64,000 nucleotides of DNA, from positions 1,984,001-2,048,000 of the forward strand of contig BQFW01000004.1 in assembly GCA_020891255.1 (NCBI GenBank), in the 5' to 3' direction. Origin of the DNA: Entomortierella parvispora E1425 (lineage: Eukaryota; Fungi; Mortierellomycota). This document shows, one piece after another, positions 51,639 to 59,300 of the stretch; positions within the stretch are counted from its first letter, which is position 1, and each line of letters opens with the position of its first letter. The notes beneath the pieces were generated by a model, which worked only from the letters and a program-made list of their open reading frames with translations, made no database searches and was not told the origin of the DNA. Made by a program: the position numbers and the translations under genes.

Positions 51639-54600
51639 ATGTCTCACGACACGGGAAGTCAGCAATATTCAATGAACGGCCAGCAGCCAGCTGACCGTTT
51701 GAATGGGTAAATGCGGCATTTGACGCGTTCGTCACAGGATAACGGCCTCTGTATAATTTTTTTTTGCGAACGTTCGTTATTTTTGACGTTAATCAAACCC
51801 ATGGCTAATGGCTTGATTAGGGTCCCGCCGTCAAACATGCCTGGAATGCATGGACTGTATCAGGGAGAGGGCCAGAGCAAGAGATTCGGAGACGATGGAG
51901 GTCTCGATGTTACCGCCGGCGGATCCTCAGGCGCTTTTCTTTCGCTTTCGCCTTCACTGGACAGCTCATACCCTGTTGTGCCAGGGTCGTCCCATAGTAG
52001 CTCAACCACGCCTGTACACAACAGTTTCTCGGCAGCTGTGCCTTCAGCCAACGGATTCTCTGCTTGGGGCACTGTGGCACAGCCTATGAATGTAAGACAA
52101 CGTTTGTATACGCCTTGACCACAGCAACAGCACACAGTGGGACTCACAGAATTCTTGTTGCCATGTTTCATAGGAGTCTGCTCGTCCAGCAGTGCGCAAG
52201 CCTTCGATGACCCGTGAGCAGCGCAAGTACTGTGGCGCCATTATGAAGCAGCTGAAAAAGCATCGCGACGCCATTGCTTTCCTCCATCCTGTGAATCCAG
52301 TGCTCCTCAACGTTCCTGACTATCCAGATGTCATCAAGAACCCCATGGATCTGTCTACCGTTGAAAAAAAACTGAATGACGTCAAATACGAGACAGTTGA
52401 CGACTTTGTTGCGGATATGAACCTCATCTTTAATAATTGTTACCTCTACAATGGTCGAGACGCTTTGGTCTCTGTCCACGCCTCGAACCTGGAACAGGCA
52501 TTCAATAGCTCGATGCGACATATGCCTAAAGAGGTGAGCCTTATTTACCAGCTATCGGAGTCATGGTGGTTAGATGAAATACTAATTGTCCGTGATGCGT
52601 TAGAACGAAAAGGCTCTGACGGAGTCCGTCTATGTGAAGGAAAGCCCCAAAAAGCCATCTACCTCAACCAAAGCAAAGAAAGAGGCTCCCAAGAAGGAGA
52701 CAAAGCTGACTCCGGTGACTTTAGTCGCCCCAGAGGCGATTGGCGCGTCAAGCACAGCCCTCAACATCACTGACTCAGAGTACTCGGCTTCAGAGGAGAA
52801 ACGACCAAAGCGGGATACCCATGCACCTTCAAAAGAAATCCCTGCAGGCGGTAAACGCAAAGGATCTGCAAAGTGGAAGAGCGACCCCCGACTTCGATTC
52901 TGCCAGACAATTGTCAAGGATTTTTTCAAGAAATCCAACGCTGAGTTCATGTTTCCATTCTTGGAGCCTGTGGATTGGGTAAAGCTCAAGATTCCCGACT
53001 ACCCAAAGATCATCAGGAATCCCATGGACGTAGGAACCATCAAAAAGAAGCTTGAGGAGGACGTGTACGAGAATGCCTCTCAGTTCGAATCTGATGTCCG
53101 TCAGGTCCTTTGGAACTGCTTCACGTTCAACCCGCCTGGGACTCCGGTTTATCTGATGGGGCGAAGAATGGAGCAATTGTTTGAGAGCAAATGGTCTGAA
53201 CGCCCAGCACCACCGACGCCACTTCCAGCGCCCGAAGTACAGGTCGGTTCTGAAAGTGAGGCTGAAGCTGAAGCCGAGGGTGAGGGTGAGGGTGAGGGTG
53301 AAGAAGTTGATTCATCTGGTAAGTGGCACTAGGACACCCATGTTCTATACTTGCCGAGAATTCAGTCTGACTTCCATATCTTGTGATCACTTTTAGATGA
53401 CAAAATTGCAGAGATGGAACGCCATTTGAAAACACTCTCAGAGCAGTTGGAAACTATGAAGGCCACAAAAAAGAAGGACAAGGGTGACAAAAAGACTGTA
53501 TCTAAAACTGCAGAAAAGAAGCCAATGCCTCAGGAGAAGTCAAAAGCGAAGCCTACTGCCAAAACTCATACGAAATCCTCAGCGAAAACAGCCGAGAAAA
53601 AGCCCGCATCAAAGAAGCCCCGGATTTTATACAGCAGTGACGAAGAGGAGGTCCTTACATACGACCAACAGCTGGAGCTCAGCAACTACATCAGTGGTTT
53701 GCAAGGGGAGGAGCTGTCCAATATCGTACAAATCATCCGCGAAACTATGCCAAATTTTGGGGTAAGAGTTACTTTCATGATCTACAGGGAATATTGATAT
53801 GAGTACAGCTTCTAATACTACTGTCTGAATTTGATAGAATGGAGAGCAGGATGAAGTTGAACTTGACATGGATCTGTTGGACCCAAAGACAGTGTACAGG
53901 CTGTATGAATTTGCAATCAGAGGCCGTCCTGAGAAGCGCAAAAGGACCCTGACGAAGAAGGCTAGAATGATTTATTCGGATGATGAAGAAATTCCGAGCT
54001 CCTCGAAGAAATCGAGATCAAACAAGAGTGGTGTTAAAGGTAGATAGTGTAGATGCAGTAAGGTGTAATGGTGTAATGGTGTAATGATCCGAGCCTGATA
54101 TTAACCTGTTCTTATGGTATAGGATCATTTGATAATGATCAGGATGCCTCCATGAGCTCAGGCAGCAGCTCCAGCTCATCCGACTCTGATAGTGATGCCT
54201 CTGGTAATATGTTGTAGCTGGGCTTTCTCAACGAAATGCTTTGATAAGAGCACTGACTCAGCATTCCACTTTTATGTTCTTGACTCTGTAGATTCAGATG
54301 CTGTTCAGGTACATTGATCTCTGAGTTTATTATTTTATCAATTCCAGGGAAACAAGTTTTCTGACCACCTATTTTTTTTTAATGTTTTAATAGGTTCATT
54401 CTTCTCCTCATCGTTCGAACTCACCAGCCGTAAAGTATGCGCGTGGACGATCGCCTCCTGCGAAAAAATCCCCACCCACCCCTACAGCTCCGCCCACGAA
54501 ACATGTTTCAAAAAAACAAAAGCAGGAGCCAGCAACATCGACCAACAGGAAGCCTAAAGCTGATAACACCTGGCTTAATCACTCTCTGACATCTAATGGC

Positions 54601-55946
54601 ACTATGTCGTTTGATGTTGCGCCACTGGATATCGATGTTGCGGAGTTGACCTCCAAGAAGAAAAGTTCCCCTGAGCCACAGGAAACACTACCCAAGGCAG
54701 AGGTATGTTTGTATACATTCCTGGCGTTTCCAAGAATCGACTCGTCCTTGATTGCTTTTCTTAATACGTCTGCATGGTCATAGGAGCACATTCAACTTGA
54801 AAATATGGAGCATTGGGCCGCATTCACTACTGAGGTCCAGCCTTCAAAGTCCTCTACTTCAACGCCTGCAAGTGAAAGTTCAAAGGCTGATCCTGCATGG
54901 GAGCAATTCCAAAGAGAAATGAAGGCAAAAAAGGAAAAGGTAATCAGAAGATCTTGCTGTGCTTAAGACATCCCGATATCCTTTGAACTAGGTTACTCAT
55001 CAGTTTTGTTCGTTGTATCGTCAATCGTACCGTGACCCTGCAGGAGCAACAATTGCAGAATGAGCAGCTCCGGAGGGAGCGTGAGGCTCGCGAGGAAAAT
55101 GAGAAACGCAGACAGGAGGAACGCAAGCGCATTGAGCAAGAGAAGGAGCGCAAGAAGTAAGTTTTGTTTATCTTTTGGTTTGATGGGCTTGACCAATTGC
55201 TTATTCTGTTTTACTTTTTTGCCTGTAACAGAGAGATTGCACGCGAAGCATACATGCGGGAGCAAAAACGAGCAGAAGAGATTCGCCAAAGGCGGGAGAG
55301 ATCTCGAGAGAGAAAGCGCGAGTTGCGCGACAGTGCAAATCCGTACTGGGAGCAGGCAATGGCGATGCAAAAGTTTGAAGTTTTACTTCTGGAGCAGCAA
55401 AGGGACGAGCACCGAAAACATGAGGAAAACGTTCGACGTCGACGTCTCACTGCCGGCGATCCCTTCTTTCACACGCAGTTGCCTCAGTACACGGCCCTCT
55501 CGGAGTCCTCTCCTCTTGGTCCTCCTGGAGTTAGACCGGGTATGGCCATATCTCCTCCTCAAATGTGGTCGCCGTCGCCAATGATGCATGCTCCTCACCA
55601 CCACTCTCCACCCGTGAGTGCGTTCACTCCGCCTCCGCCTCCGATCCATCCTCCCTTTTATTCACCCCAGCCCCCGCCACCACCCACTTCGCCGCCACGA
55701 GCCTCGACTCCACCACCACCACCTCCTTCCAGTACCCCCCCTCGGGCGTCGACGCCTCCTCCTCCTCCTCCATCGACACCCCCACCCACGAATCATCAGC
55801 AACCACCTCCACCTGCATTTGATGCCTGTCGACCCAATGGAGGTGCCGCAGCCTTTGCGAGTCCTCTGACAGCGCCTGTGGCCATGAACGGAGTCGGAGC
55901 GGAGGAGGCTTTAGACGAAGACGACATGAACTGCGAAGAAGACTAG
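51639..55946 (+). CDS. BDF1: BET-family double bromodomain protein (Bdf1-like): BD1, BD2, ET, Ser/Asp-rich segment and extended coiled-coil/Pro-rich C-terminus
   Basis: BD1 has PDYPDVIKNPMDLSTV...NCYLYN and BD2 has PDYPKIIRNPMDVGTI...NCFTFNP. The ET domain reads LTYDQQLELSNYISGL...EVELDMDLL. About 11 phase-consistent exons run through to the stop at 55946. The start is inferred from exon 51639-51706. Confidence 0.9.
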
Positions 55947-56048
55947 GAGGGTTCCTGTATATATATATGTGATTGTACACCACTAGCATTAGACCCCCGG
56001 GGGCCGGCCCCTTTCCACCCATGTAACATACCAGAAAATAACAAAAAA

Positions 56049-56215
56049 AACGCGGCCCCGCCGAGAGCGGTCTTGACAAAAACAGAGTATTTTTTTTTTG
56101 GCGGGAATCTTTTTTTTTCCTTCATGCAAAATGAAGTCCAGTCACGTTCAGCGAGAAAGAGCGCGAAAAATGAAAAAAAAAAGGAACGGACAAAAGAACG
56201 ACAAAAAAAACGCGT
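56049..56215. promoter_or_regulatory. Cluster of E2F/SBF/MBF-like G1/S elements upstream of Spc7
   Basis: TTTGGCGGGAA at 56097-56107, GCGCGAAAAA at 56161-56170, ACGCGT at 56210-56215 and ACGCGG near 56050. Confidence 0.5.
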
Positions 56216-56338: not shown

Positions 56339-59300
56339 ATGGACGAGGACCCAGTGCCCATGCAGGAACACGCACCAGTCCATGCCGACGGGCCAGTGCT
56401 GGACAATGTCCCTTCCGAGCAGACAGGCGAATCCACCACAGTGACCGAACCTGCAATCCAGGAGGATAATCAGCACAATCAGAGCAATCCAGACAATCAA
56501 TCAGGACAGCTTTTGCTCAAGCGGCCATTGGATCAGGAAGACGCGACCTCACCTTCAGAAGAGCCGGCCCATGACCAATCACCACCACCTTCTGCAGGCC
56601 ATAATCACGAGAACAATGACATCAACAATGACACCAACAATGACAACAACAACAGCAGCAATGAGCATGCCGAATCTAATGATTCCTCCAACAAACGGAG
56701 AAGAATCTCGGTACGCCAATGTTGTTGGAGGGAAAAGAAGCGTCTACTTTTCTGTTGATCTTGCTTTGTATCTTGCTGACATGGATTATCTCGGTTGTTT
56801 AGTTCCCAGGAAAGTCGATTTTGAAATCCTCGACCCAGGATGGAGATGGGGACCTTTCGATGGAGCCCGGAGTCACGGATGAGCTGAATCAACAAGCAGA
56901 ATCCGCTGTATCGGCGCTTGACGTGACAGAGACATTCTCGGGAACAACGTAAGTGCAAGCCTTTTTTTTAAGAAAAAATGTTATTACGGTGAATTTGCTG
57001 ACAGAAAGCAACGACAACCGACAATGCGTTCTTTTTCCATAGCGAATTTACAAAGAGGAATCGACGATCGATTGGAAGGCGTGTCAGTTTCGCTACAACA
57101 GCTAGAATCAGGTAACGCGACGAAAAAGGATCAAGCAAGGACTTCATGCCAAAGGAGAAAAAATGTCTGGACATTAATTCAAAACAACCTTTTCTTTGCG
57201 GATATAGAATGTTTGAGCGTGATGAAAAAGAGGACGAGCATGCCAAGACTACTAGCTTTGTGGAGGGGTTGAATCCTCGAATCAGTCCTGACCATGCTTT
57301 CTCGTTTGAGAACAGTCAAAAGGATGCTGGCAATAGCAGCGATACAGGCCATGATAGTGGCGCTGCTGGAACTAACGACGATACAATGGACTCAGCATCG
57401 AGCATCAATAACGAAGGAGATGATCAAGAGCCGCGCTCAGAGACGACCACAGGAAGTAGCGACTCGGAGAAGGAGTAAGTTTTTATTAACCGCTATTGGT
57501 TGAATCGTTTTCATGAGCCTACTGTCGTCAAACTAACCATCTCGTTTTTGCGACCAGGCGAAGCTTTGAAGTCAACATTGGCCATTCTGATAACACGGGA
57601 AGCTCAGGTGGGGCTTACAGCGTAGGCGATTTGTTGTCGTCCTCGCTTGGTGATTTCGGTTCGAATCCATTTGATGAGTCCGACGCCGGACAAGCCAGTA
57701 GCAGTGATGACGACACAAAGGAGATTTTCCCACCACAAAAGTTTATGAAACGATCCTCAGGAGTTAGCATCGGTTTCTTGAATCGGGACGACAATGAACT
57801 TGGACCGGCTGCTGATGTCGATGGAGGCACACAGGATTTTGATGGAGATTCCAGAGATTTTTCGACGACGAGCCAGGATAACTATCAAGAAGACAGTATG
57901 GATTATCGCTTCCAGAACCACAGATCATCTCTGACAGGACAACCCGTCACGGCCGAGGAGCGCGAGGACACTTTTGAATTCCTTTCCATGGACCAGATAG
58001 CTGGACCATCGGGACACCTGGACGCGCCGATGAGTCAGATGAGCGATGGCGATACCCTTGACATGGACATTACTGCCCCCATCGGTGGAATTCTGGAACA
58101 AGAGCAACCTCCTACCTCTTTTCATGCTACTGAAGTTGAGGAAGATACTGTAATGTCTCAACATGATTTGACTGACATGAGCATTGGACAAGAGCGCGAG
58201 CCCTTGCCACCAGTTTCTTCTTCTGATGCGACCACACCCGCACCGGCACCGGCACCGGCACCGGCAAACGCAACCACGATCGCACCCCCAGCTCCAACCG
58301 CGCCAGTCACTCAAAACCCGCCATCCTCGAGATCAAGTATACCATCGGCAAACCCAAGATCGAATCCATTACTGGTTCGTATTTTTAATAGAAGCGCCAG
58401 CAGCGACGATCTCAAGAAGCACAAGGATACTGCCGCCAAAGAAGCTGCCAAAGAGCGTTTGTCTCTTGATGGTAGTAGCAACAGCGAAAATAGGCCAAAG
58501 TTCCCTTCAACGCCACCACGTAGAACTTCTTTTCTTCGGAATTTCTCCTCGCCGGCAGTGGATGCGGGTCGAGAGCTGGGAACGCCTCAGAAGTACACTC
58601 CCAATGTCCGAGCTAGTTTCAACATCTTTCCAGAGGTCATGGAGAAACAGCTGCAGCACTTGGAGACCTCCAAGCCTGCAGTCCCTGGTAATGACTCGAC
58701 AGAACTATTTTGAGTGTTTTTTTAGGAATGGGAGACTAACCGTTAGCCTTTGTGAAAAAATTCTGGACGATCAGTGTTCCAAGCGCCACATGTCAGCCCA
58801 GAAACGAGCAATCTGGCAAGGAGGATTGCTCGCTATTCATCAGGTTCCTTTGGAATGGCCGACCCGTTCTTGGACGGCGGTAGAGAGGATCAGCCCGAGC
58901 CCTTGAATCGAGTCGAATATCCCCGTCCAGGGATGGATAGCTCAGTCATGGAGGGAATCGAGACAGAGGATATCCCCACAGAGGACCTGCAGGCGAGCCT
59001 AATGATGGATGACCAGGATAACGACGAGCAGGACCAGTCCTCTGAGATGCAGAGCGAAGGAATGACAGACGAAGATTCATTCTCTGAGGTACATAATTCG
59101 CCAAAGAATCACAAAACACCATCTGACTGTCGAGAGGGCGCTGTCGGGGCAATGTTTTTGACAATGCTGTTTTCTTCCATGTACTAGCTTCCTCCAATCA
59201 CCCTCAACAAGTTCTTGAGTCTGGCAGGAATCCACTTTATGGACCATTTGGTGGCGAGTACACGGCGGCGTACAATAACCCATAGACCGACCATGCCGGA

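Follow-up and report, generated by a model that had tools for sequence, protein, structure and literature searches.

Does a fungal BET gene carry, behind its conserved domains, a counterpart of the C-terminal region through which animal BRD4-long contacts P-TEFb? This question was raised by a sequence-only reading of a 64,000-nucleotide stretch of Entomortierella parvispora DNA (referred to here, at its full length, as the window), in which the exons following the ET and Ser/Asp-rich regions of a predicted BET gene seemed to spell out three blocks in the order in which these occur in human BRD4. When exons were placed by eye, on the basis of GT-AG borders and an unbroken reading frame, the region 51639-55946 on the + strand proved to be a single intron-rich BET gene of 12 exons and about 1123 codons, with the following layout:

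51639-51706, + strand, exon 1, read by eye.
51821-52091, + strand, exon 2, read by eye.
52174-52533, + strand, exon 3, with bromodomain 1 (PF00439, E=9.5e-26).
52604-53318, + strand, exon 4, with bromodomain 2 (PF00439, E=1.4e-20).
53397-53761 and 53838-54039, + strand, exons 5 and 6, with a motif-B-like coil and the ET domain, separated by an intron at 53762-53837.
54123-54203 and 54292-54308, + strand, exons 7 and 8, a Ser/Asp-rich, SEED-like run read from the sequence.
54394-54702, + strand, exon 9, read by eye.
54784-54939, + strand, exon 10 (exon A), holding blocks 1 and 2 by its translation; the program-listed open reading frame here is 54805-54966.
55044-55156, + strand, exon 11 (exon B), an E/R/K coiled-coil spacer by its translation, matching no Pfam family.
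55232-55946, + strand, exon 12 (exon C), holding RERSRERKRELRDSANPYWEQAMAMQKFE by its translation.

Its two tandem bromodomains and C-terminal ET domain place the encoded protein in the BET family. The searches, here and below, used single window exons or database proteins as queries; the first half of the ET domain (exon 5) on its own exceeded the cut-off of the BET family PF17035 with E=6.5e-7, and the complete domain in the orthologue P0004 reached E=2.9e-22. Directly behind the Ser/Asp run, read-through past the donor of intron 7 (54204-54218) adds four codons before a stop. Were this intron retained, the resulting protein would finish at the Ser/Asp run, comparable to BRD4-short and to most fungal BETs.

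The three tail exons (A, B and C) translate exactly to the strings on which the sequence-only reading was founded, and the three tail-exon junctions are all canonical GT-AG and in frame. It could be argued that exons 10 to 12 make up a separate gene, which gene predictors have fused to the BET gene, and an ORF caller indeed returned a stand-alone fragment starting from a Met inside block 1 (P0003). However, the gap between exons 9 and 10 measures 81 bases, has canonical GT-AG ends and retains the frame. BET domains and the same tail are moreover found within one annotated protein in P0004 (Haplosporangium, 979 aa), P0009, P0017-P0021, Linnemannia and others, this joined architecture being annotated in more than 10 Mortierellaceae species as well as in Basidiobolus, Entomophthora, Mycoemilia and Spiromyces. 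In the annotated orthologues P0004 and P0009 the junctions KAKKEK/EQQLQ and EKERKK/EIAREAY run on uninterrupted, and P0009 (Gryganskiella, 1134 aa) is colinear with 51837-55943, with HSP ends that coincide with the exon borders placed by eye. Because annotated Mortierellaceae orthologues map colinearly over the whole locus, the 3′ exons are part of the BET gene, and a separate gene at this position seems extremely improbable. Both the identification of the gene as a fungal BET (PF00439 twice and PF17035 in the upstream exons) and the assignment of the tail to it had been put forward by the sequence-only reading, and both held.

The gene encodes a ‘long-form’ BET, in which the bromodomains, the ET domain and the Ser/Asp run are followed by a module of about 140 residues. 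This module opens with a Trp block and a D-P-x-W-E-Q-F block; next come an E/R/K coiled coil and then a basic helix, which a short break separates from an amphipathic helix bearing Q-x3-M-x2-F-E-x2-L. The following features could be delineated in the module and in the sequence behind it:

54790-54825, + strand, block 1, IQLENMEHWAAF, which reads N-[ML]-E-x-W-A in Mortierellaceae and NVDRWA in Basidiobolus.
54877-54939, + strand, block 2, SSKADPAWEQFQREMKAKKEK, with D-P-x-W-E-Q-F conserved.
55236-55331, + strand, basic helix 1, with the clusters RQRRERSRERKR and an R-E-L (AF2 prediction, exon-C residues 2-33).
55332-55340, + strand, helix break S-A-N, before a Pro (AF2 prediction, residues 34-36 non-helical).
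55341-55451, + strand, helix 2, containing the core motif (AF2 prediction, residues 37-73).
55353-55388, + strand, core motif QAMAMQKFEVLL, or Q-x3-M-x2-F-E-x2-L, from its conservation in 12 sequences.
55470-55904, + strand, Pro-rich low-complexity tail from the translation, conserved in P0001 and P0002.
55905-55943, + strand, acidic end EALDEDDMNCEED, identical or nearly so in P0001, P0002, P0004, P0009 and P0019.

In the numbering of exon C, the residues of the core motif are Q41, M45, F48, E49 and L52, and the basic cluster RQRRERSRERKRELR stops 11-13 residues ahead of M43/M45. AF2 modelling on an alignment of 15 sequences (mean pLDDT 88) predicted a helix at residues 2-33, a break at 34-36 and a second helix at 37-73. 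Such a helix pair with a 3-residue break is compatible with the tandem helices of BRD4, but its shape is a generic one. When the model of the helix pair (79 residues) was used for a fold search of the ESM Atlas, unrelated helical proteins alone came back, a result that is uninformative for such a shape. The stretch 55335-55469 was also weakly similar to the start of the human DDI2 helical domain (PDB 5k57_A, E=0.076), including a common ‘..KF..L.EQQ.D’ and a terminal ‘DPF’, a resemblance that is probably due to chance.

Behind the F-E of the core motif, the protein continues for about 188 mostly Pro-rich residues, which corresponds to the extra Pro-rich tail of about 190 residues noted earlier. 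At their extreme C-terminus the long BETs carry a second conserved motif. Its Mortierellaceae form is ‘[LF]DEDDMNC[ED]ED’, whereas the long BETs of Entomophthorales and Kickxellomycotina (P0064, P0083, P0096 and P0097) have ‘LEEGEL[IL]E’, duplicated once. This end is a short motif of acidic-hydrophobic character, which BRD4 is not known to possess.

How far this module extends among fungi was assessed in a comparison set of 124 fetched proteins, which were scanned for the tail blocks. A word search with P0004 returned 120 fungal BETs and no animal protein. A word search with exon C yielded only two fragments from close relatives (Mortierellaceae), and an exhaustive phmmer search with exon A against 1.84 billion representatives yielded only Mortierellaceae, plus one repeat protein (P0006). 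This 622-residue protein matched block 2 with E=8.5e-7 and has the helix start W-[DE]-x-F-[RQ]-R in common with it, but was rejected as likely unrelated. It is built with at least 5 repeats of about 50 residues bearing ‘ESEWD.FRR.VK...EEQS.LYEDYKA’.

Outside of the Mortierellaceae, the entire module was found in Basidiobolus ranarum (P0031, hypothetical protein K7432_001872), where it is colinear with that of the window. An HMM of the module derived from Mortierellaceae only matched P0031 over HMM positions 1-157 and residues 563-714 with E=1.7e-15. The coil and the third block also occur in Entomophthora muscae (P0096), in a Logan protein (P0097) and in two Kickxellomycotina, Mycoemilia (P0064) and Spiromyces (P0083), and a profile-profile comparison between Mortierellaceae and Zoopagomycota aligned in the expected register with P=3.3e-4.

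Given that E, R and K abound in exon B and in large parts of exon C, these matches might merely reflect generic charged coiled coil and low-complexity sequence devoid of any specific motif function. The module HMM match to P0031 indeed carried a high bias from the coil (29.7 of its 50 bits), and the unrelated helical proteins returned by the fold searches would fit such an explanation as well. However, an HMM restricted to the non-coil blocks 1 and 2, again from Mortierellaceae only, matched Basidiobolus with E=2.5e-7 and little compositional bias. Furthermore, in the core motif, written more broadly as Q-x3-[MLI]-x2-[FY]-E-x2-[LM], 12 sequences from three subphyla (Mortierellaceae, Basidiobolus, Entomophthora, P0097, Mycoemilia and Spiromyces) all have the Q and the E, and conserve F/Y and M/L/I, although neighbouring positions vary. 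With an HMM of block 3 alone, P0031 was the top match from outside the Mortierellaceae and aligned at the correct place, yet with only E=0.014. Because the blocks are kept across Mortierellaceae genera and because blocks 1 and 2 match Basidiobolus with low bias, their conservation exceeds that expected by chance, and an explanation by generic coil is disfavoured to the point of being quite improbable. Downstream of the motif, the fungal relatives have roughly 60 to 220 further residues.

Most other fungal BETs sampled finish at the Ser/Asp run, and no tail was present in the sampled BETs of Mucorales, Umbelopsis, Gigaspora rosea, the chytrid Spizellomyces, Paraphysoderma, Mitosporidium and Dikarya. 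Judging from this sample, the module has a patchy distribution: two phyla, with three subphyla between them, possess it, and it went undetected in the other groups. The Mortierellaceae themselves also have shorter BET paralogues of about 560-830 residues without the tail (P0014, P0016, P0024 and P0026-P0029), which align over the bromodomains and the ET domain only. Mortierellaceae thus possess a long and a short BET gene, in parallel to BRD4-long versus BRD2/3 in animals. The Glomeromycotina Rhizophagus (P0090 / P0101) has a long BET of about 1005 residues, in which a charged coil is followed by a W-containing stretch. The tail of P0090 does not fit the Q..M..FE pattern and was not retained as a member of the module; it may be a decayed relic of it.

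In human BRD4-long, the P-TEFb-interacting domain (PF17105) spans residues 1209-1362, with a core at 1329-1362. Residues 1308-1362 of the human protein are printed in PMC10472254, where counting back from F1362 reproduces the published residue numbers, and a tryptic peptide specific to BRD4-long is printed in PMC10496930. The C-terminal stretch (the last 53 residues) and the block 2 peptide, which the sequence-only reading had given for BRD4, could both be confirmed from these papers. The BRD4 C-terminus has been described as two helices with a linker between them, in which F1357, E1358 and L1361 were modelled in the cyclin groove and in which mutants of Q1350, L1354 and F1357 were reported to lose CDK9-cyclin T binding (bioRxiv 10.64898/2026.04.09.717428). 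Against the printed human sequence, the Q, M, F, E and L of the window motif correspond to Q1350, L1354, F1357, E1358 and L1361 of BRD4 at identical offsets (0, +4, +7, +8 and +11). Among the 124 proteins, the pattern Q-x3-[LM]-x2-F-E-x2-[LM] was encountered solely at this C-terminal block, and by chance 6e-4 occurrences would be expected in each full-length protein, or 1.8e-4 in exon C.

BRD4 moreover needs the basic clusters RKR and RRRR together with a hydrophobic motif about 10 residues downstream (Itzen et al., PMC4081074), and in the window the basic cluster RQRRERSRERKR is located about 11 residues upstream of the hydrophobic motif, in line with the spacing in BRD4. The D-P-x-W-E-Q-F of block 2 resembles the BRD4-long-specific peptide (PMC10496930). 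Both BRD4-long and the window protein have two bromodomains, and both carry the module on the C-terminal side of their ET domain and Ser/Asp run. An [FW]-E-Q-F block and a charged coil are present in each; the basic helix, break and amphipathic helix that follow in BRD4 are also predicted for the window protein. Of the three-block order originally proposed, the order itself is present and the third block has the hot-spot residues and spacing of BRD4; the BRD4 string given there for block 1 could be traced to no paper and was counted as a lead only.

The two modules also differ in several respects. The window module is about 140 residues long versus 154 in BRD4, and its helix break takes up about 3 residues versus about 7. 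The motif sits at the extreme C-terminus in BRD4, whereas it is internal in the window protein, which continues for about 188 residues after the F-E. Ahead of its PID, BRD4 has a long region rich in Gln and Pro, in place of which the window protein has a linker exon of about 100 residues.

The sequence-only reading had called for a significant match to a BRD4 profile, and by this measure the window protein itself falls short. Neither the window exons nor P0004, P0009 and P0019 of the Mortierellaceae matched the Pfam family BRD4_CDT (PF17105, gathering score 27 bits) at E<=10, and its precomputed annotation was present in 0 of the 120 fungal BETs. On the helix pair of Basidiobolus (P0031, residues 659-704), BRD4_CDT was the sole one of 24,736 families to match, covering positions 4-44 of its 44 with 18.7 bits and E=0.0012. 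On P0031 the model ends 12 residues past the invariant Q, which is the register from Q1350 to F1362 in BRD4. It was also the best match from the 13 motif pieces scanned. It is nevertheless below the 27-bit cut-off, and weakened from E=0.0012 to 0.06, or was lost, depending on the trimming of the piece. Because it is sub-threshold and sensitive to trimming, the Pfam link through P0031 is suggestive only. P0031 is the only fungal sequence to reach BRD4_CDT, and it is closer to BRD4 than the window protein is, having I-D before the Q and a motif ending in L-F.

No match to BRD4_CDT was obtained with the tail pieces of Entomophthora, P0097, Mycoemilia, Spiromyces or Rhizophagus. Likewise, no BRD4 chain was retrieved from the PDB by sequence searches, for which exons A and C, two motif profiles (A1 and A2) and the Basidiobolus piece served as queries; weak matches to ScpA, DDI2 and a ribosomal protein were taken as chance. 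Feature searches of the ESM Atlas with exon A and the P0004 tail returned nothing usable, and a word search with the P0097 tail retrieved only itself; all three word searches and the exhaustive one brought back fungi alone. The P0097 tail has a stretch that is presumably common to BRD4.

We consider it likely, with a probability of roughly 60%, that the module is homologous, if divergent, to the domain through which BRD4-long, BRDT and Fs(1)h-long of animals interact with P-TEFb. As the main alternative, the module might be a fungus-specific extension with short motifs of its own and another partner, resembling BRD4 through convergence or chance. Such an origin would be consistent with the lack of PF17105 matches on the window and the Mortierellaceae, with a sole Pfam link that is sub-threshold and trimming-sensitive, with an internal motif behind which come a Pro-rich tail and a further conserved motif of acidic character, and with the patchy distribution in fungi. 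In addition, the origin of cyclin T proper has been placed only close to animals (PMC11482795), and short amphipathic motifs can evolve convergently. HIV Tat and HEXIM1 are unrelated to BETs, yet are ligands of the cyclin T surface: the Tat site and the modelled HEXIM1 site overlap the modelled BRD4 site on cyclin T (bioRxiv 10.64898/2026.04.09.717428), and Tat-like RxL, basic-cluster and Leu motifs have been noted in the BRD4 PID (Itzen et al., PMC4081074). Because Tat and HEXIM1 show that such motifs can arise independently, they lend support to convergence.

However, convergence would have to account for several independent BRD4 features that coincide in one tail, namely the position after the ET domain and Ser/Asp run, the [FW]-E-Q-F block, the coil and the basic helix. 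It would further have to produce all five of the hot-spot residues with their spacing exactly kept (P about 2e-4 to 6e-4), as well as a Pfam model that aligns end to end on P0031 in the predicted register. On balance, an independent fungal origin of the module appears rather unlikely, and we infer homology to the BRD4 domain instead.

If the module is indeed homologous to that of BRD4-long, the bromodomains would place the BET protein on acetylated chromatin, after which the basic helix would contact a fungal CDK9-type kinase and the amphipathic helix would dock on the partner cyclin through the side chains of Q, M, F, E and L. That partner would be an ancestral cyclin T/K-type cyclin, of a type predating cyclin T and hence unlike the partner of BRD4. 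Any such binding to a CDK9-cyclin pair could then serve to recruit or stimulate a CTD kinase at active genes. We know of no HEXIM/7SK system in fungi that the module would counteract.

In the literature, the C-terminal P-TEFb-binding motif is treated as a trait of BRD4-long, BRDT and Fs(1)h-long (PMC13373324, PMC5133849). The motif was stated to be particular to BRD4's long isoform and to have no equivalent in yeast (PMC13373324), in agreement with the earlier remark that yeast Bdf1/2 lack the BRD4-long domain, and BRDT and Drosophila Fs(1)h-long are the other BETs with a C-terminal domain of about 40 residues (PMC5133849). Bdf1 and Bdf2 of Saccharomyces cerevisiae and most fungal BETs, composed of two bromodomains, an ET domain and a Ser/Asp run, are orthologous to the window protein over its first half, but unlike that protein they finish at the Ser/Asp run. 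Yeast Bdf1 has been reported to contact the CDK9 homologue Bur1 via its ET domain (PMC13373324 / PMC5133849). A study on the evolution of promoter-proximal pausing did not consider BRD4 (PMC11482795), and our literature search found no paper on a BRD4-like C-terminal motif in fungi.

An origin of the module before the animal-fungal split, with loss in Dikarya, would fit its patchy distribution. More tentatively, and at somewhat less than even odds, a BET-CDK9 link via a C-terminal helix pair could be ancestral to animals and fungi, and would then predate cyclin T proper as well as HEXIM and full NELF. Long-form BETs would preserve it in Mortierellomycotina, Entomophthoromycotina and Kickxellomycotina, whereas it would have been lost repeatedly (in Mucorales, chytrids and Dikarya), with yeast rewired through the ET-Bur1 contact. 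If this were true, an acetyl-lysine reader would have been directly coupled to the CTD kinase before animals, cyclin T and the HEXIM/7SK brake arose, and the ‘short’ architecture of yeast Bdf1/2 would represent a secondary loss. Culturable Mortierellaceae would in turn offer a simple system, free of HEXIM/7SK, for the effect of the motif on CDK9 alone. The minimal motif would be sharpened as well, as the Q, the hydrophobic residue at +4, the F-E and the hydrophobic residue at +11 would alone have survived about a billion years.

Beyond the BET stop codon, the intergenic or 3′-UTR region 56000-56200 contains several long A and T homopolymer runs and the GC-rich, palindrome-like CCCCCGGGGGCCGGCCCC. 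The next gene on the + strand begins near 56340, and its product is acidic and Asn-rich.
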